From Hyaloraphidium curvatum SAG 235-1 (lineage: Eukaryota; Fungi; Monoblepharomycota), in contig JAIVFI010000009.1 of assembly GCA_025558095.1 (NCBI GenBank), positions 620,001 through 684,000 on the forward strand: 64,000 nt of DNA. The letters are read 5' to 3'. How positions within the stretch are numbered: position 1 is the stretch's first letter; each line of letters starts with the position of its first letter. The notes below the pieces were generated by a model, which saw only the letters and a program-made list of their open reading frames with translations, was not told the DNA's origin and ran no database searches. The translations under genes and the position numbers were made by a program. This document shows, piece by piece, positions 402 to 10,117 of this stretch.

Positions 402-1403
402 ATGGACTTCGCCCGCCACCCCGCCGCCTGGCGCGGCCGGGAACTTGCAAAAGATCACTCGTGGGAATACCGCTTCGGCGCTGCCGAGCTCTCGGAGCTC
501 CATGCCGCAGCCCTCGCACTCGTCTCCCGCACACCGTCTCCCAACCTCGCGCACCTCCGGCCCTCCGACGCGCCCCTACCGCTCCTCGAGCCCCGGTTGG
601 CCGAATGGAGGTCGACGCTCCTGTCGGGCCGCGGCTTCGTGCTCCTCAGAGGGGTCCCCGTGGATTCCTGGCCGCGCAAAGTGGTCGAGTCGGCCTACCT
701 CGCCCTAGGCGCCCACCTGGGCTCCTTTGTCCCGCAGAACTCCAACGGGGACCTGCTCGGACACGTCAAGGACGACGGGTCGGACCCGAACGATCCGACG
801 GTCAGGAGATACAGAACGAGGGAGCCGCAGCCGTACCACGTCGACGGATCGGATGCTGTGGGGCTCCTGTGCCTCGTTCCTGCAAAGTCCGGCGGCAAGT
901 CCAGCATCGTTTCGTCGGTCGAGATCTACAACGAAGTCGCGAGGAAGAGGCCGGATCTGATGGACTTGCTCCGCGTTCCGTACTACTTTGATTCCTACGG
1001 GCAGAATGCGCCCGGCACCGATCCATGGTTCACCACGCCGCTTTTCGTCGGCACAAAGGACGCATTCCGGTTCTTTTACGTGAGGTGGTACATCGACAAG
1101 GCGCAGGGAAACCCACGCGTGCCGAGGCTGAGCAAGAAGCAGGTCGAGCTTTTGGACCTCATCGATGCGCTGGCTGCGAGCGATGAGCTGCGGCTGGACA
1201 TGGATTTCGCACCGGGGGACATTCAGCTGGTTTCAAACAGGGTCGTTCTGCATGCGAGGGAGGGCTACGAGGATTGGGAAGAGCCCGAGAGGAAGAGGCA
1301 CCTGCTGAGGCTGTGGCTGGCGATGGATGATAAGAATGCGGCGCCAGAGAGTTTCGACGACGTGATTCCGGGAGCTCCCGAGCCCACAAAGAGTAAAATG
1401 TGA
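402..1403 (+). CDS. TauD/TfdA-family Fe(II)/2-oxoglutarate dioxygenase, intronless
   Basis: 333 aa ORF with GRGFVLLRG, HxD motif (PYHVDGSD), distal His (VLHAR) and C-terminal RHLLRLWL typical of TauD-like enzymes. Confidence 0.9.
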   Translation: MDFARHPAAWRGRELAKDHSWEYRFGAAELSELHAAALALVSRTPSPNLAHLRPSDAPLPLLEPRLAEWRSTLLSGRGFVLLRGVPVDSWPRKVVESAYLALGAHLGSFVPQNSNGDLLGHVKDDGSDPNDPTVRRYRTREPQPYHVDGSDAVGLLCLVPAKSGGKSSIVSSVEIYNEVARKRPDLMDLLRVPYYFDSYGQNAPGTDPWFTTPLFVGTKDAFRFFYVRWYIDKAQGNPRVPRLSKKQVELLDLIDALAASDELRLDMDFAPGDIQLVSNRVVLHAREGYEDWEEPERKRHLLRLWLAMDDKNAAPESFDDVIPGAPEPTKSKM

Positions 1404-2067: not shown

Positions 2068-3114
2068 CTAACCTTCTCGCTCGGCCTTGGCGCCGTTCAC
2101 GGCCGTCCCAGCCTTGGCCAACTTTTCCGCCTGCGTCAGCAGCTTGCCCTCGTTCTCCCTTTTCTCCTCCCGCTCGCTCCATCGGTCGACAAGCAGCGCC
2201 GAATGCGATCTCGTCAGCAGAGTAAACTTCACTAGCTCTTCTGCCACATCCACGACCCGCCCCCTGAGCTCCGACTTCTTCATGCGATCGTCGTCATCGA
2301 ATTCCGTGAACGCCTTTGGCACCGAGCTCTGATTCGGAATCGTGATCATTCGCATCCACCGTCCAAGCAGCCTCAGCGTGTTGACCGCGTTGAAAGACTG
2401 CGACCCGCCCGACACTTCCGCGACAGCGAGTGTCCTGGACTGCGTCGGCCGAACGCTCCCCCTGGCGAGCGGGATCCAATCGATCTGCCCCTTCATCAGA
2501 CCCGTAATCGCCCCGTGCTGCTCCGGCGTGACCCAGACTTGGCCCTCGCTCCATTCGGAGAGGTACCGCAGCTCGAGCACCTTGTCGTGGGTCTCGTCCC
2601 GCGCGACGTCGTGCGGCGGAAGGCCGAGAGGGTCGTAGACGCGGCAATCGCAGCCGAGCTTCTCGAGGAGGCGCGCGAATTCGAAGCACAAGAGACGGGA
2701 GAAGGAGCGGGGCCGGAGGGAGCCGTAGAGAAGTAGGATGCGGGGCGGTAGAGGAGTGTCGTTGGATTGGCCGATCTTGGGGAAGAGGGAAGTCACCGTG
2801 GACTGTTCGAGGTCCAACTGGGCGACCCAGTCCGCCGCAGGATCAGGGTTCTTCAAGATCCGGTAAGGCCTGTGCCTCGCATTGAGTTCGTCCTCGCTCA
2901 TTGCCGCCAGGAATGCCGGCAGCGGCGTCAGAATCCGCGCGGGTGGCGCGGGCACGAGGGGGTGCCCGGGGGCCGCCTGAGCTGCGGCGCCAGTCATCTT
3001 TCGGATCGGCAGAAGAGCTGTAGTCGAAGGCCGGTTGAAGCCGCGGAAGATTGCCAGCATGCAACTAACCACTCCGACAAGGATGCTCGTGAAGAGCATG
3101 AGCGTGGGCTGCAT
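2068..3114 (-). CDS. arsH: Arsenical-resistance protein ArsH (NADPH-dependent FMN oxidoreductase) with N-terminal hydrophobic extension
   Basis: [76 protein letters not shown] are hallmark ArsH motifs; ATG at 3114 in GCCGCCATG context; no intron. Confidence 0.95.
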
Positions 3115-3292
3115 GGCGGCTGGTGTGCAGCAGATTCCAAAGCAGAAACCTGGACTGGACCTGGTCAACTGGTCAGCTCCTTGGCGGCCCGCTTGAATCG
3201 CCTCGCGCGCAGCTCTACGTCCCGCCTTTCGTTTCGGGCGACCTCAAGTGGTACTGGACTGGACAACCGCGCGTGGAGCTCTTTCGACCGAC
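3115..3292. promoter_or_regulatory. Bidirectional promoter region arsH/ACR3
   Basis: 178 bp between divergent ATGs; contains CTGGACTGGAC at 3150-3160 and 3254-3264. Confidence 0.6.
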
Positions 3293-4628
3293 ATGGCTTC
3301 AGAAACCAGCGCGCTCGACCAGACCACGCCCTCCGAACCCCGCGACGCCGACGCCGACACCATGGGCGGCGCCGCCACGAAGAGCCCCCCCGACGTCCCA
3401 GTTCCCGTTCCCGCCCACACCCCGAAACCCCCTGCGCAGCTGAGCCTACTCGACAAGCTCCTTCCCGTCCTCATCATCGGGGCCATGATCGTCGGCGTGC
3501 TCCTGGGTGTCTACGTGCCGGGCGTCCAGGAGGCGCTCGGCGGCCCCGGCACGCCGCACATTGCCGACGTCTCGCTGCCAATCGCCCTGGGACTGTGGCT
3601 CATGATGCTCCCCGTGCTCACAAAAGTGCGGTACGAGCTCCTCGGGCTCATCCTGAAGGAGAAGCAGGTGGCCAAGGAGCTTGCCATCTCGACCTTTCTG
3701 AACTGGGTCATCGGACCCGCGCTCATGACGGGCCTGGCATGGGCGTGCCTGCCGGATCTGCCAAACTACCGCGCGGGCGTCATCATGGTCGGCCTGGCGC
3801 GCTGCATCGCCATGGTGCTGATCTGGAATCAACTAGCCGACGGCGACCCGGAACTCTGCGCCGTGACCGTGGCCCTGAACTCGATCCTGCAGATCCTTCT
3901 CTACGCACCGCTGGCCATGCTGTACGTTCGCCGTGGGACCCGTTGCAGGAGACTCCTGACCGTTTTTCGCCCTTTCCAGCTACCTCGGTCCCTCGTACCT
4001 CGCCGGCGCTTCGGGGTTCTGGCTCGTCGCCAAGTCCGTCCTCATCTTTCTCGGCGTCCCCCTCGTCCTCGGCGTGATCCTCCGCTACTCCCTCATCCTC
4101 ATCTTCTCCCGCTCCTGGCTCGACAAGAAGTTCCTCCCGTACTTTGGCCCCGTGGCCCTGCTCGCCCTCGTCTACACGGTCATCGTGCTCTTTGCCTCCC
4201 AGGGCCCGCAGATCGTCTCGCAGATCGGCGCGGTGGCGCGGACCGCCGTCCCCATGCTCATCTACTTCTGCCTCATGTGGGCCGCTTCGTTTGCCATCGC
4301 GTGGTACACCTACGCGCCCTACGCCTACGCCGTCACGCAGGCCTTCACCGCCTCGTCCAACAACTTCGAGCTCGCGATCGCGGTCGCCGTGAGCACGTTC
4401 GGGTACCAGTCCGAGCAGGCGCTCGCGGCCACCGTGGGGCCGCTGATCGAGGTGCCGGTCCTGCTGGCGCTCGTGTACGTGGCGAGGTGGGCGAGGACCA
4501 AGTGGTACGCGGACAGGGACAGGTGGCTGTACGAGTCGGGGAAGGTCAAGGTGCTCGAGCACCACAAGGAGTATGACCTGGGGGAGACGGAGGACACGGA
4601 TGGGAAGGCGGCGCAGGGGCAGGCATGA
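3293..4628 (+). CDS. ACR3: ACR3-family arsenite efflux permease (one intron, 3922..3979)
   Basis: LSLLDKLLP, GLWLMMLPVLTKVRYE, NWVIGPALM, GLARCIAMVLIWNQLA.GD, ASSNNFELAIAVA, VGPLIEVPVL; the GTACGT..CTGAC..CAG intron joins ORFs 3248 and 4074 in frame. Confidence 0.96.
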
Positions 4629-4806
4629 TTGGCGGCTCCGGATATTGCCTCGTCCGCGCATGAAATCGATGCCCTCCTGGGTGAAAGCGGTGTAGAGAGC
4701 GGATTTTGCGGAACAAATGCAACGCCGCATCGAACAGCCTACGCAAAGATCAGCCATCGATTCCGCAAATGTGGAAAAACAGTCCGCGTCCGTGCGCACA
4801 TCCGCA

Positions 4807-5832
4807 TCACCGCTCCCCCAGCGGAATCGCCCTCAGCACCGGCCACCTGTCGAACGCCTCCCTCGGCAACGTCCACTTGCCGATGTCCGCGGGATCTCCC
4901 CCGCACCTGGCGTTGGTCTTGAGCTCTGCGCAGAGCGCGTACGTCCCGCCGAACCCCGCGGATTCGAGCGCGTGCAGGAGCGACCGCATGGTGATGTGCG
5001 GCAGCGAATCGAAGCACCGCCGCAGCCTCTGTTCGTCCCATCCGGCGGGGTTCGAGGGGCACGAAGGGTCGCAGCAGGCGTCGGCCTCCTCGCCGCGTTC
5101 CTCCTCCAACGGGGGCAGGCCCAGGTCCCGCAGCAGGCCGTCAAAGTCCGGTGGGTTCGACGAGGAGGGAAGCGAGAGCAGAGTGTCGCGCAGCGCCGGG
5201 AAGAGCTCGGCGGCGAGCGGGAAGGAGGCGGCAAAGAGGTCCGAGTCGAGGTCCAGGGCGAGGGCCGGGTCCGCGGACTCGAAGAACACGGAGGTCGGTT
5301 CCATAGGAGGCGAAGCGGTTGGAGGCGTGATTGGAGGTGCGTGAACGGCCTGCTGGTACGGCGCGAGCGGCGAAGAGAGGGAAAGGAGCGCGGCGGCCTC
5401 GGCAAACTCGGCCGATTCGTCCGACGAGCGCGGCGGGGAGACCGGCAGCCGGAGAGAGCTGCGGTCATTGCGATCTGCATCGCGATCGATCGGAACGAGT
5501 TCGGGGTGGCCCGGCAGCGGAGCCGCCGCGAGCGCCCACAGCGCCTGGAGGTCCGCGTCCGAACGCCCCGCGGAGCCCCGCAGCACGGCCAGCAGGGCGC
5601 CCTGCAGCTCCTCCGCGCGCCGCCTGAGTTCCGCACTGTGCGCCTCCAGCCGCCGCGCGTTCTCTGCGGCGGCCGCGGCGTTCCTCAGCGCGGCCTCCTG
5701 GCGCGCCCGGAAGCCGAGCTGCGCGCGCCTGTTCTGCTCCAGCCGCCGCTGCTTGCGCTCCTCGTCGCCCAGCGGCAGCGGCTTGCGGCCGGGCTTGCGC
5801 CGGGGCTTGGGGGCGTCCGCGGAGCCGTCCAT
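4807..5832 (-). CDS. Yap1/Pap1(AP-1)-like bZIP transcription factor with C-terminal cysteine-rich region
   Basis: KPGRKP...RRLEQNRRAQLGFRARQ basic region plus leucine zipper; C-terminal CCDPSC and LCAELKTNARC (resembles the Yap1 c-CRD LCSELMAKAKC). Confidence 0.88.
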   Translation of the reverse strand: MDGSADAPKPRRKPGRKPLPLGDEERKQRRLEQNRRAQLGFRARQEAALRNAAAAAENARRLEAHSAELRRRAEELQGALLAVLRGSAGRSDADLQALWALAAAPLPGHPELVPIDRDADRNDRSSLRLPVSPPRSSDESAEFAEAAALLSLSSPLAPYQQAVHAPPITPPTASPPMEPTSVFFESADPALALDLDSDLFAASFPLAAELFPALRDTLLSLPSSSNPPDFDGLLRDLGLPPLEEERGEEADACCDPSCPSNPAGWDEQRLRRCFDSLPHITMRSLLHALESAGFGGTYALCAELKTNARCGGDPADIGKWTLPREAFDRWPVLRAIPLGER

Positions 5833-5966
5833 CGTCGATCGTTGGTGGTGGCCGGGCCGGTGGGTGCGTGGCGGCGGCGGCGACTCCGATTTTGCTAGGA
5901 AATCACAAATCCAAGAGCGGCAGCGGCAGAGCAGCAGAGCGGCAGCAGCACAAGCAGGAGGCAGCG
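5833..5966. promoter_or_regulatory. Bidirectional promoter region bZIP/arsC-like
   Basis: 134 bp between divergent ATGs; inverted repeat GATTT-N7-AAATC at 5888-5904. Confidence 0.55.
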
Positions 5967-6647
5967 ATGGACATCTTCCCGTCCCTCGAGGCTTCGCTGG
6001 ACGCGATCCCCGCCTCGCGCCTCGGGGCGCTCAAGGAGCTCGCCTCCCACGCCGCCTCGCGCCTCTCGGCGGACCAGCCGGCCCACCTGGTCTTCATCTC
6101 CACGCACAACTCGCGCCGCTCGCACATCGGCCAGGTGATGGCTGCTGCTGCCGCCGAGCACGCCGGGCTGGCAAACGTGCGCACCTATTCGGCCGGCACC
6201 GAAGTCACGGCTTTCAACGCCAATGCCGTGGACGCCCTGCGCGCCCACGGGTGCACCATCGACGTCTGCACCGACCAGGAGCTTCTCTCATCCATCTTGG
6301 GCTCCCCCGTGGAATCCTCGGGGATCGATCTGGAGGACCCGACCAACCCCGTCTACCTCGTCCGACCCAGGCCCTCCTCCTCGCCATCCATCTGCTTCTC
6401 CAAGACTCTCGCACACCCCTGGCTGCCCAAGTCCGGCTTCGCGGCCGTCATGACCTGCACCTCGGCCGACGCGGCCTGCCCCGTCGTGGCGGGCGCGAAG
6501 GTTCGGATCGCGCTGCCGTACGAGGACCCGAAGAAATCCGACGGGACGGGCCAAGAGGCGAATGTGTACGGGGAGAAGTGCAGGGAGGTGGGCCGGGAGA
6601 TGCTGTGGGTGATGATGGAAGCCAAGAAGGAGATGGTCGGATATTGA
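5967..6647 (+). CDS. arsC: LMW-PTP-fold (thioredoxin-type) arsenate reductase ArsC-like protein; P-loop Cys replaced by Ser
   Basis: FISTHNSRRSH (canonical FICTHNSRRSH), YSAGTE, FSKT, AVMTCTSADAACP, LPYEDPK; intronless; Ser codon TCC at 6099-6101. Confidence 0.88.
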   Translation: MDIFPSLEASLDAIPASRLGALKELASHAASRLSADQPAHLVFISTHNSRRSHIGQVMAAAAAEHAGLANVRTYSAGTEVTAFNANAVDALRAHGCTIDVCTDQELLSSILGSPVESSGIDLEDPTNPVYLVRPRPSSSPSICFSKTLAHPWLPKSGFAAVMTCTSADAACPVVAGAKVRIALPYEDPKKSDGTGQEANVYGEKCREVGREMLWVMMEAKKEMVGY

Positions 6648-6706: not shown

Positions 6707-8287
6707 TCAAAGCCTTTCCGACCCCTTTTCCGCCCTGCGCATCGCCTCCTCCACCACCCACATCCGATCCTGCCCCCACCACGTCTCCATCTCACCCCCG
6801 CGCCCCCCGACCTCCACCGAAACCGACGGCACCCCCCACACGCCCCTGGCGTTCATCTCCCCCGTGTTCCCCCGCATCTCGGCCCTCCACGTCTCGTGGT
6901 CCTGCGCCATCGCCGCCGCCAGCCCGTCCGCGCCGACCCCGGCCGCGGCGGCGATCGCCGCGAGCCCGGCATCGCTGCCGTATTCTTTGCCCTCGAGGAA
7001 GGCGGCGCGGGTGATGCGGACGAACCAGAGCATCGATTGCTCCTTGGCAGCGGCCCGGTCGGGGGTCGTGCGGAGGATGTGGTAGTAGACGGCTGCGGCC
7101 CGGCCCCACCTGCGGGCGCGATCGAACGCCAAAGCATCAGCAACGGCGCATCGAACAAGCAAAACAGGGAGTTCCACCCACCAAGGCAAGGGATCGGAGA
7201 CGGACAGCCCCGACCCGTCCCCCGACGCCCGCTGGACGCGGCCCGAATCGAGGGTGATGTAGATGCGCTTGGCCGCCGACAGCGGGACCCCCCTCGTGAT
7301 CATCGGGGGCACGGGCTTCAGCTCCCACTCCCAGTCGGGGTGCGCGGCGAAGAAAGCGGGGAGCCGCTGCGCGAGGATGGCCGAGTACGGGGAGCGGAAC
7401 GAGGCGTAGACGACGATCTTGCGGGTGCGGGAGGCGGGGAGCGCGGGGAGGGCCAGGCGCGCGGGGTCCGGGGTGTACAATGAGGGCGATGGCATGGCGA
7501 CGCCGGTGATGCGGGCGAGGTCCGACAGTAGGAAGGCGAGGCGGTCCGGGCCTCCGTACCAGGTGCCCAGAGTCTTGACGAACAGGCCATCATAGCCGCC
7601 GCCGGCAAATCGAAGAGCACAGTTGGCAGCGATCCTTGCGTCGGCTTCTTCCTGGTTGGGCAGCGCGTGGTTGGGCCCGGGGATGGCGCCGAGCGCGGTC
7701 ACCCGATCGGAGGCGGGCGCGTGGCTCCACAGCTCGTTGCCCACACGAGCAGCGAGATCGAACGCTTCCGCAACCGAAATCACTTTTGCCTCGAGCCTGT
7801 TTTCGGCCCAGGCCATCACTCGCGCAGCCGCGTTCAGCACTTCGGCGGGCGGCTGCTCCAGCGCCTTGCCCGACTTGGGGTCCTCGAAGGGCGGGAACGC
7901 CGCGCGCCAGGCCGGCGCGATGCACGCCGCATCGCGACGGAAGTAGCGCCGCTCCATGTCGCCCAGCCCCGGCGCATCGGGGCTGACGACGGCGCGCAGG
8001 GCGACCGCCACGTGGCCGCCGAACGCCGCCAGCGCCTTCGGCAGCGTCTGCACCGCGAGGAGCGCGAGCGGGTCGTCGAGCTGGAAGAACACCGCGATCG
8101 GCAGCGGGAAGCCCGTGCGAAGCCGCGACGCGAACTGCAGCCCTCTGGCAAATCGGTCCGACGTTATCACGGTGGTGATTGCGGGGGACACCACGCGGTC
8201 GCGCAGCGCGACCGCGTGCGGCTTGACGGACGCCGTGAGCGCCGATGCCGGCGGCACGTCCAGCGTGGGCTTGGTGCCGGAGGCCAT
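6707..8287 (-). CDS. DsbA-like 2-hydroxychromene-2-carboxylate isomerase / GST-kappa family protein, two-domain
   Basis: VYASFRSPYS, GVWGVPSV, WWGQDRM motifs; ATG 8287; probable in-frame intron 7110..7181. Confidence 0.8.
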   Translation of the reverse strand: MASGTKPTLDVPPASALTASVKPHAVALRDRVVSPAITTVITSDRFARGLQFASRLRTGFPLPIAVFFQLDDPLALLAVQTLPKALAAFGGHVAVALRAVVSPDAPGLGDMERRYFRRDAACIAPAWRAAFPPFEDPKSGKALEQPPAEVLNAAARVMAWAENRLEAKVISVAEAFDLAARVGNELWSHAPASDRVTALGAIPGPNHALPNQEEADARIAANCALRFAGGGYDGLFVKTLGTWYGGPDRLAFLLSDLARITGVAMPSPSLYTPDPARLALPALPASRTRKIVVYASFRSPYSAILAQRLPAFFAAHPDWEWELKPVPPMITRGVPLSAAKRIYITLDSGRVQRASGDGSGLSVSDPLPWWVELPVLLVRCAVADALAFDRARRWGRAAAVYYHILRTTPDRAAAKEQSMLWFVRITRAAFLEGKEYGSDAGLAAIAAAAGVGADGLAAAMAQDHETWRAEMRGNTGEMNARGVWGVPSVSVEVGGRGGEMETWWGQDRMWVVEEAMRRAEKGSERL

Positions 8288-8454
8288 GGCGCCGGCGGGG
8301 GATGGGGGGGTGGGGACAGTTGAGGGACACGCCGCAAGGCACGGCTGGGCGGGCGGTTTTCCTCGGCAAATCGGCGGAACTGCCTCCACGACAACCCCAT
8401 GCCCCGGGGCGAGACTCTGAATCTGTTCGCAGTTTACCACTCTGCAGCCAGTTC

Positions 8455-9934
8455 CTACAGCGAGCTCCGCGCATCTCCGGCCTTGGCCAGGAGCGCCTTG
8501 AGGCTTTTGATCTCCTCTTCGTACCTGGACCGTAAGACGTTCCACAGGGCGTTCCGCTTGCCCTCGTCCTTCGGCATCCTGGCCGCCTGGGCCACGACGT
8601 TCAGTCGGCAGCCCCAGAGCCAGTCCGCCACTTTCGGATCCTGGAGCCAGCTGATCTCGTTGCCGTACGTCGCAATCTTGCAAACGATGTAGTGCAGCGG
8701 CAGATCGGGATGCGGCACCGGCACGGTCAGCTTGTTCTTGTATCCGTCGTCGGCAAAGGTGAGCTCGATGAAGGCGATCAGGGCAGCGCTGAAGACTTGC
8801 TGGCACGTGCGAACCGGCTGCAGGGTCAGCCGGTCGCCGTTGAAGACGGGCGTCGCGGGCCGGCGCGGGATGCTGTTCGCCGTGCAATCGACGTAGAGCG
8901 TGCCCTCGGGCATGCTCTTGGTGCCGCCCGTCAGCTGGATGCCCGTCGCCGAGATCGACACCACCCTGCCCATCCGCACGACGTCCTTGATGGTTCTGAG
9001 GCTGGCGAGCTCGGCTGCGGTGACGGTCGCGCAATGGAACACGCTCGGTTCCACAGCAGGATCGAGCCTCATGAGCTCGCCCCCGCGCTCGATGGCCAGC
9101 AGCAGCTCCTGCGGCGACCCGATCGCGGGATCGACGACGGCACGGTGCGTCGCGGCGGCCATTGCAGCAGCGGCGGCGCCCGGCTTGCCGGCGGTCTGCG
9201 AGGCCACCCGGTCGAACATCCAGTGGTCCCGTGGCATGACCCAGGTGATCCTCGCGGGATCCACGCCGCGGTCGAGCAGCCAGAGGCACGCATCGATGCC
9301 CGTCTTGCCGGCGCCCAGCACGGCAAAGTGCCTGCGGCCCGGAGCGGCTTCCGCGAGGGCGTTGGGAGGGAGGCATGCGACGCCGGACGCCACGGGGAAC
9401 GGGGTGGGCCGCATGGAGGGCACACGGACCTCAGAATAGGTGGCGTCGACGATCTTGCGGGCCTTGATGGCGGTAACGGTTCCCGAGACGAGGGAGCGCG
9501 CCGTCCCGCTCGCGAAATCGTACTGCACGCGGTGGGCGGCATTCAGCACAGAAGCAAGGAAACCGGCAATACGAGCCCACCTCGTGCATGGCAAGGTACT
9601 TGACCCTCCCGCTCGGCAGCAGCGTCCCCTCGACGACCTCCTGGAAGTAATGCAGCACCTCACTCCAGGCCGCCAACTCCATGAGCCCCGCGTTCCCGCC
9701 CCCAGTGTCCACCCTCCCCTTCCCGAGCTCCCTGCTGCACACCCCGTAGCACACGCTCGGCTGGTGCAGACGAACGTGCGGATAGGCGGCGGTCCAGTGC
9801 CCCCCGGGACGTTCCAGGCGGTCGACGAGGACGACGATGGCGGAGGAGGAATGCGAGACGAGGACGTCGGCGAAGGCGAGGCCCATGGCGCCGGCACCGA
9901 CGATGGCATAGTCCGCTTCGATGGTGGTGGCCAT
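8455..9934 (-). CDS. FAD/NAD(P)-dependent oxidoreductase (flavin monooxygenase-like), one intron 9523..9580
   Basis: IVGAGAMG FAD motif, GGHW..AYP.VRLHQPS, second Rossmann motif VLGAGKTG, LYVDCTA. Confidence 0.88.
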
Positions 9935-10117
9935 CTTGCAGGCGTCCACGACGTGCTTTGGGGTGCGGGAGACAGGGAGCGTCCACGGAATGTTCCGTCT
10001 GAAGAGTCGACGCTGCATGCGATTTCCACACGAATCCCGGCCCGGATCCATCAGGGGTATAGATCATAGCAACTGACGATTCTTTCTTCATGAATAGCAT
10101 GATTCAGCTTCCGCACC

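Follow-up and report, generated by a model that had tools for sequence, protein, structure and literature searches.

We analysed a window of 64,000 nt from the genome of Hyaloraphidium curvatum (G000:C9:620001-684000; assembly of 31.9 Mb in 55 contigs, the window's own contig measuring 849 kb), in which four arsenic genes lie together between positions 2068 and 6647. Read along the window, which has a G+C content of 60-74% (per 2 kb), they are ArsH(-), ACR3(+), a gene for a bZIP regulator (-) and an ArsC-like gene (+), forming two divergent pairs (Table 1). An earlier note on this DNA, made from the sequence alone, had described four adjoining arsenic genes in two divergent pairs in an early-diverging fungus; the open reading frame (ORF) list, the sequence and the profile matches place all of them at the coordinates it claimed, and the host is such a fungus, a monoblepharid. 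The 134 bp that it gave between the ATGs of the bZIP and ArsC-like genes (5832/5967) is exact. Its 178 bp between ArsH and ACR3 (3114/3293) is true only if ArsH begins at M1; the distance becomes 295 bp with the annotated start at M40 (2997) and 232 bp with M19 (3060), the start favoured by the relatives. The term operon-like, which it also used, can stand only as a figure of speech, as the genes are separate, eukaryotic and divergently or convergently transcribed.

A genome-wide profile search showed ArsH and ACR3 to be single-copy genes and, since the same genes are also linked in three other organisms, their juxtaposition is not due to chance. The cluster is real, transcribed and evolutionarily maintained. 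Taken as a whole, the results are probably best explained by a genuine eukaryotic arsenic-detoxification cluster, with sensing by the bZIP protein, a reductase supplied by a paralog and a regulon made up of two loci.

Table 1. Features of the arsenic gene cluster of H. curvatum and of its promoters, in window positions.
Feature	Position	Strand	Evidence and remarks
ArsH (NADPH-dependent FMN reductase, organoarsenical oxidase family)	2068..3060	-	TIGR02690, Pfam FMN_red; start taken at M19 (ATG 3060-3058), alternatives M1 at 3114 and the annotated M40 at 2997
17-bp element GATTCCAAAGCAGAAAC	3133..3149	+	ArsH/ACR3 divergent promoter; candidate shared cis-regulatory site
Repeat CTGGACTGGAC, two copies	3150-3160 and 3254-3264	+	ArsH/ACR3 promoter; first copy abuts the 17-bp element; read from the sequence
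ACR3 exon 1	3293..3921	+	TIGR00832 positions 1-156, 187 bits; Pfam SBF; contains GLARCIAMVLIWN
ACR3 intron, 58 nt, GTACGT...CTGAC...CAG	3922..3979	+	X1 contig joins 3921 to 3980
ACR3 exon 2, including stop codon	3980..4628	+	TIGR00832 positions 192-327, 156 bits
AP-1-like (Yap/Pap1-type) bZIP, 341 aa	4807..5832	-	Basic region ~5698-5790; C-terminal Cys domain (C273, C301, C310, CCDPSC patch) ~4810-5060
Inverted repeat GATTTTGCTAGGAAATC	5888..5904	+	bZIP/ArsC-like promoter; reverse complement matches the 17-bp element at 12/17, a weak resemblance (pattern scan)
ArsC-like, low-molecular-weight (LMW) phosphatase fold, 226 aa	5967..6647	+	Pfam LMWPc 23.7 bits, cut-off 23.2

Transcription of the cluster is recorded in a public run (X1), in which expression is not rankable, the run being kept as contigs. 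A contig of 5,280 nt reaches from below window position 1900 up to 5847 and leaves out precisely 3922-3979 (GT..AG). Thus the run contains RNA, the ACR3 intron is real, and the ArsH, ACR3 and bZIP genes are transcribed. At 5847, which is 15 nt upstream of the bZIP ATG, the contig ends and Illumina adapter follows, and this adapter-flanked position is the only transcript end that the run provides. The ArsC-like gene is represented in X1 by a single low-depth contig of 436 nt (6188-6623).

The same genes are linked in relatives, whose loci were searched by tblastn with the joined ACR3 exons as query. ArsH(-) and bZIP(+) form a divergent pair in locus L009 (SRR26194948) and in L010, a metagenome locus that also carries TauD(+) and shares the TauD-ArsH neighbourhood with the window. 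ACR3(-) is divergent from ArsC-like(+) in L015 (SRR23967301), where bZIP(+) follows, and in L011 (SRR26194948), where the pair lies at the contig end. The 3' end of L011 and the 5' end of L009 are both poly-G in the same orientation, and the two contigs are probably adjacent. The relatives' loci have 52-55% G+C and encode proteins from 42% (bZIP) to 87% (ArsH core) identical to those of H. curvatum, so that they represent organisms distinct from it. A single inversion of the two middle genes converts the window order into ArsH(-) bZIP(+) ACR3(-) ArsC-like(+), which recreates both pairs seen in the relatives. As the linkage is conserved and the order rearranged, the cluster predates H. curvatum and has been held together through rearrangements. 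Furthermore, full-length members of the short bZIP family adjoin arsenic genes in each of the four organisms where they were found (4/4). The novelty that the earlier note had implied is overstated, since three relatives carry the same genes in shuffled order and similar clusters have been published (PMC12256816).

ArsH matches TIGR02690 (resist_ArsH) with 334.5 bits, against a cut-off of 292.25, and is the sole match above that cut-off in the genome; the match to Pfam FMN_red has an E-value of 1.4e-26. At its N-terminus the protein is extended in eukaryote style by about 90 residues, and this extension is kept in L009 and L010 from 'HPLV..LTP.P.FL..MS..EL..RH.PYR' onward. The relatives conserve the sequence from about residue 22. 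The L010 ArsH ORF starts MFRPFSRLFSASPISKM ('MFRPFSR..') and aligns to 'IFRGFNR..' of the window protein. The N-terminal segment (window 2900-3114) is basic and Ser/Thr-rich with no acidic residues, and in composition it looks like a mitochondrial or organelle-targeting presequence. The longest ArsH ORF adds a hydrophobic stretch, and that part is not conserved. In the ArsH tree, a branch with a support of 97 (Shimodaira-Hasegawa approximate likelihood-ratio test, SH-aLRT) divides a eukaryote side from the named Proteobacteria; the window protein belongs to the former, as do the chytrid Nowakowskiella, Mucoromycota and the stramenopile Ochromonas. The placement of ArsH among bacterial-type imports in the earlier note is thus not borne out: with a eukaryotic clade and a eukaryote-style extension, the sequence evidence argues that ArsH is no recent bacterial import. 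ArsH has been reported in 47.6% of fungi (PMC11370035). Five close eukaryote-type relatives of ArsH, 403-480 aa long (P0126, P0134, P0141, P0143 and P0146), have phosphatase-like domains fused to them (PF22784, in three cases with PF00782 DSPc as well) and may represent naturally occurring fusions of ArsH with a reductase or phosphatase.

Removal of the intron restores the ACR3 frame (...LAMLYLGPSYLAG...), and it is solely owing to the intron that each half of the gene falls below the TIGR00832 cut-off of 282.8. The L011 ortholog is intronless and 81% identical. A conserved Cys in the R-C-I-A-M segment and a Glu in the G-P-L-I-E-V-P segment are both needed for As(III)/H+ antiport, and the window protein has both segments, GLARCIAMVLIWN and VGPLIEVPVLL. 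ACR3 is 44% identical to the ACR3 of a Flavobacteriaceae operon, and its closest Atlas clusters, which we treat as a lead only, are eukaryotic; by these comparisons ACR3 looks eukaryotic. A joint transfer of ACR3 and the ArsC-like gene from an operon of the Flavobacteriaceae type was considered and is unsupported on the same two grounds.

Among the cluster genes, only the ArsC-like gene is clearly bacterial. It scores 33 bits (cut-off 174) against TIGR02691, the model for thioredoxin-coupled arsenate reductases of the pI258/B. subtilis ArsC type, and belongs to a separate Bacteroidota/Planctomycetota subfamily that the sources name 'protein-tyrosine-phosphatase'. Its homologs comprise 531 matches; in the top 120 the only named eukaryote is H. 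curvatum, and the rest are Bacteroidota or Planctomycetota at 41-49% identity. In a tree of 121 rows, a single clade (SH-aLRT 99) unites the four eukaryote copies with one short unnamed protein; its sister clade (87) contains a protein from a Flavobacteriaceae metagenome-assembled genome, and an insertion of about 22 residues is common to both clades. The bacterial members lie in arsR-LMWP-acr3 or DUF6428-arsR-LMWP operons (LMWP, LMW phosphatase). The bacterial origin proposed earlier for this gene is upheld by this tree, and the pattern agrees with one transfer from bacteria to fungi and a later duplication.

The P-loop of the window protein reads STHNSRRS, in which Ser45 (codon TCC, 6099-6101) replaces the family Cys (CTHNSRRS). 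Cys occupies this column in all 12 aligned homologs (alignment A1), in the cluster copies of L011 and L015 and in the paralog on contig C42 described below. The CX5R loop with its nucleophilic Cys is therefore missing from the window protein (S45-THNSR-R51), and the modified As(V) arm of the earlier description was correct in that the Cys of CX5R is a Ser. The downstream Cys pair (equivalents of the resolving Cys82/Cys89) is kept, TC164TSADAAC171P being invariant in the alignment. An AlphaFold model (predicted local distance difference test, pLDDT, 93.3) is closest in structure to LMWP arsenate reductases; in the PDB, Foldseek ranks D. indicus ArsC2, B. subtilis ArsC and pI258 ArsC highest (TM-scores by target, 0.72-0.77). 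As the characterised LMWP arsenate reductases all use the P-loop Cys (PMC6514093), reductase chemistry is predicted to be lost with Ser45, and the cluster ArsC-like protein is probably inactive as a reductase. A possible precedent for Ser45, a Corynebacterium mycothiol-type ArsC without a P-loop Cys, was dropped, since its C8 sits in the active-site loop (PMC6514093).

The regulator is of the Yap/Pap1 type, as had been proposed, on the evidence of its basic region, profile matches and C-terminal Cys domain. The basic region, which is followed by a coiled coil, contains QNRRAQLGFR, the Pap1/Yap signature N-x2-A-Q-x2-F/Y-R, and the relatives have QNR(R/K)AQL(G/N)YR. A family profile built from eight proteins matched the HapX bZIP (7aw7, 5e-8) and the Pap1 bZIP (1gd2, 3.5e-6) in the PDB, aligned on QNRAAQRAFR. 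When 1.84 billion representatives were searched exhaustively with a profile, only four full-length family members and about 20 partial matches came up. The C-terminal domain is conserved across the family (RRC273FDSLPHITMRSLLHAL...LC301AELKTNARC310...W..P...F..WPVLR), and it may be akin to the Yap1 c-CRD (type C...LCxELxxKAxC). The same domain occurs in longer distant relatives that have Pfam bZIP_1 matches (up to 34 bits), three of them with weak PAP1 matches (best 0.0047, below cut-off).

A second protein of the genome, 490 aa long, has the same basic region and C-terminal domain; it is a local AP-1-like factor, of which the cluster bZIP is a short and specialised paralog. The gene for the longer protein lies on the window's contig, some 70 kb upstream and flanked by unrelated genes (G000:C9:550530-551972), and also, with identical score, at G000:C46:179770-181212, which suggests a duplicated segment or an uncollapsed haplotype. 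The nearest relatives of the cluster bZIP are this local paralog and its kin, and the cluster gene presumably arose by a duplication separate from that of yeast Yap8. About 140 nt downstream of the cluster bZIP of L015, at L015:11147-11290, lies a second stretch of bZIP basic region that is 65% identical to residues 11-58 of the window bZIP; the contig ends soon after, and the stretch may be a tandem duplicate.

A second locus is found on contig C42 (G000:C42:367652-369545, equal to L008:3653-5546). There, a Cys-bearing ArsC-like paralog (G000:C42:368865-369545, +) is arranged head-to-head with a MIP-family channel gene (367652-368725, -), with 139 bp between the ATGs. The channel matches Pfam MIP at 2e-39, has NPA motifs and is aquaglyceroporin-like. 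The pairing of an aquaglyceroporin with an arsenate reductase is known from aqpS-arsC of Sinorhizobium meliloti. The C42 locus is similar in that it pairs a putative aquaglyceroporin-type MIP with a Cys-bearing ArsC-like protein, and differs in being eukaryotic and divergently transcribed. Such a pairing would let As(III) formed from As(V) exit down its gradient, if the MIP conducts As(III).

The two loci share a promoter element. The 17-bp element of the ArsH/ACR3 promoter has a counterpart, GATTCTCAAGCAGAAAC, in the MIP/ArsC-like promoter (C42:368799-368815), and the pattern GATTNNNAAGCARAAAC, which covers both, has exactly two matches in the 31.9-Mb genome, namely these two arsenic promoters, compared with none for a reversed-pattern control. 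A rough estimate from base composition puts the chance expectation at about 0.05 genome-wide and about 2e-7 within the 139-bp promoter. As the element is common to both loci and unique to them in the genome, the two probably form one regulon. With up to one mismatch allowed, each of the 10-kb loci L009, L010 and L011 has one or two copies of the core AAGCAGAAAC, one of them in an arsenic-gene promoter. A wider regulon was considered and rejected: one-mismatch matches to the 17-bp element numbered 7 against 4 for the reversed control, and the ORFs near three of them (L021, L023 and L025) have unrelated domains (protein kinase, NTPase).

In the mechanism that we propose, ACR3 is the As(III) efflux carrier and ArsH a flavoprotein of the family that oxidises trivalent organoarsenicals. 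The bZIP protein would sense As(III) via its conserved C-terminal cysteines and activate the divergent promoters, as Yap8 does in yeast. The ArsC-like gene entered an ancestor of the lineage in a single transfer from a Bacteroidota-type bacterium. If the cluster copy is inactive, reduction of As(V) would fall to the Cys-bearing C42 paralog beside the aquaglyceroporin, and the C42 locus and the ArsH/ACR3 promoter would be joined in one regulon via the 17-bp element. Arsenic induction, the binding of a factor to the 17-bp element and the loss of reductase activity are all steps that we infer. A fuller version can be put forward tentatively, and we regard it as rather doubtful: an arsenic regulon that arose in early-diverging fungi, independently of yeast Yap8, in which the short, dedicated AP-1-like paralog senses As(III) by its C-terminal cysteines and acts, directly or with a partner, through the 17-bp element that links ArsH/ACR3 to the aquaglyceroporin/ArsC pair, and in which the Ser45 ArsC-like protein is kept as a non-catalytic arsenate binder.

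Several observations weigh against this mechanism. The window bZIP taken alone falls below a Pfam call (bZIP_1 E = 7.3). A pattern scan of the promoters for canonical Yap sites (TTAnTAA, TTACGTAA or the Yap8 element) had no match, and among the eight promoters examined there is no TTAnTAA-type site, the Yap8 element TGATTAATAATCA included; canonical AP-1 and cAMP-response element (CRE) sites are likewise missing from the window promoters, where the ACGT cores present are too short for assessment. The 17-bp element is unlike a bZIP site, and another factor may bind it; its core AAGCAGAAAC is missing from L015. The Ser45 codon is one base from a Cys codon (TGC) and has no read coverage, so that Ser45 may be an assembly error. 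The adjacency of L011 and L009 has its sole basis in their matching poly-G ends. Finally, the transcription seen in X1 occurred without any known arsenic exposure.

Some of these observations would be expected if the bZIP protein were a general AP-1-like factor for oxidative or xenobiotic stress that merely adjoins the arsenic genes, with control exerted by another factor, for example a binder of the 17-bp element, which has a gapped nTTCn-5-nGAAn resemblance. The promoters' lack of a Yap-type site, the element's unlikeness to known bZIP sites and the transcription of three genes in a run with no known arsenic treatment all agree with such a factor. The 490-aa paralog, however, is the more natural candidate for a general role, and the short paralog adjoins arsenic genes in all four organisms despite the rearranged order, which makes this explanation unlikely in our judgement. 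The Ser45 protein, in turn, might have changed its job to become an arsenate- or phosphate-binding sensor or chaperone, or a phosphatase-like hydrolase with a Ser nucleophile. Its intact ORF, the retention of the rest of the P-loop (THNSRRS) and of both downstream Cys residues, a model that folds (pLDDT 93) and a contig that shows transcription are consistent with a functional protein of this kind. Yet every characterised LMWP arsenate reductase relies on the P-loop Cys (PMC6514093 and PDB entries), the Ser is found in this one sequence only, with no sign of a selected Ser-bearing lineage, and coverage in the sole RNA run is low. We consider a changed job somewhat improbable.

Bacterial contamination, mis-assembly or the very recent arrival of a complete bacterial ars operon by transfer might be suspected from the ArsC-like family, which is otherwise bacterial and whose bacterial members lie beside acr3. 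This explanation is refuted by the spliceosomal intron of ACR3, which is removed in RNA. Furthermore, the 849-kb contig has eukaryotic neighbours, the regulator is a bZIP protein, ArsH groups with eukaryotes, and ACR3 is far from the Flavobacteriaceae operon protein in identity (44%) with eukaryotic nearest Atlas clusters. Its probability is negligible, and a eukaryotic cluster with one gene of bacterial origin is preferred.

The classic cluster of this kind is yeast ARR1(YAP8)-ARR2(ACR2)-ARR3(ACR3), and the short and the longer bZIP paralogs of H. curvatum parallel Yap8 and Yap1 of yeast (PMC6545440). As in S. cerevisiae ARR1-3, the H. curvatum cluster has an AP-1-like bZIP gene next to ACR3 and an arsenate-reductase gene, a short divergent promoter, and a regulator with conserved cysteines that could bind As(III) (PMC6545440). 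In contrast to the yeast cluster, the reductase here has an LMW-phosphatase fold of bacterial origin and is not of the Cdc25/rhodanese type, ArsH is present, and the promoters contain neither the Yap8 element nor another TTAnTAA site. Since the cluster bZIP is a paralog of the local AP-1-like factor, common descent with Yap8 is unlikely, and independent assembly of the two clusters is plausible from the sequences.

Clusters in Starship elements of Ascomycota consist of a core arsH-arsC-arsB with variable accessory genes, including a bZIP gene that the authors proposed to be Yap8-like (PMC12256816), and deletion of the arsenic region of one such element, Hephaestus, sensitised Paecilomyces variotii to arsenate (bioRxiv 10.1101/2020.03.06.981548). 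These clusters resemble that of H. curvatum in gene set (ArsH and ArsC with an exporter of As(III), often joined by a bZIP protein) and in variable gene order (PMC12256816; bioRxiv 10.1101/2020.03.06.981548). They differ in that H. curvatum belongs to another fungal phylum and that its ArsC-like protein is of the P-loop CTHNSRRS family of ~200-250 aa, with no other named eukaryote in the top 120 matches. No evidence of a mobile element turned up at the H. curvatum cluster, where no search aimed at mobile elements was made. The arsR-LMWP-acr3 operons of Bacteroidota share with the window an ArsC-like protein of the same family, at 41-49% identity and with the ~22-aa insertion of the Flavobacteriaceae-type subgroup. 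Unlike those operons, the fungal cluster has a bZIP protein and not ArsR, its genes are monocistronic and divergent, the fungal ArsC-like copies have no signal peptide, and the nucleophilic Cys is replaced by Ser in the cluster copy.

The gene set itself, and clustered arsenic defence with a bZIP protein, are therefore already known from Ascomycota Starships and yeast. The novelty lies in the fungal phylum concerned, in an ArsC family of the Bacteroidota type and its transfer, in a bZIP paralog recruited separately, in a copy with Cys changed to Ser, in the second locus with its aquaglyceroporin/ArsC pair and in the 17-bp element that both loci share. Fungal arsenic gene clusters that encode their own AP-1-like regulator are thereby extended from Dikarya to a deep fungal branch. 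As the regulator was seemingly recruited separately, it would be a second, convergent arsenic-dedicated bZIP paralog. For the poorly studied Bacteroidota-type ArsC family, a clear bacterial-to-fungal transfer is documented, and the natural Cys-to-Ser variant and the intact paralog within one genome provide a ready pair for probing the function of the family. Additionally, the genome-unique candidate cis-element gives a concrete and testable regulon of two loci.

Further genes were noted on either side of the cluster. Directly upstream of ArsH, at window 402-1403 (+), lies a gene for a TauD/TfdA-family Fe(II)/2-oxoglutarate dioxygenase, over which the X1 contig extends and which has a counterpart at L010:2097-2909. 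Its position beside ArsH in both the window and L010 could be plain synteny or could mark a further member of the cluster. On the other side, 3' of the ArsC-like gene, a long ORF at window 6707-9376 (-) has in its C-terminal part a DSBA-like thioredoxin-fold domain (Pfam 1e-10), and a flavoprotein-like ORF follows next at window 8455-10029.

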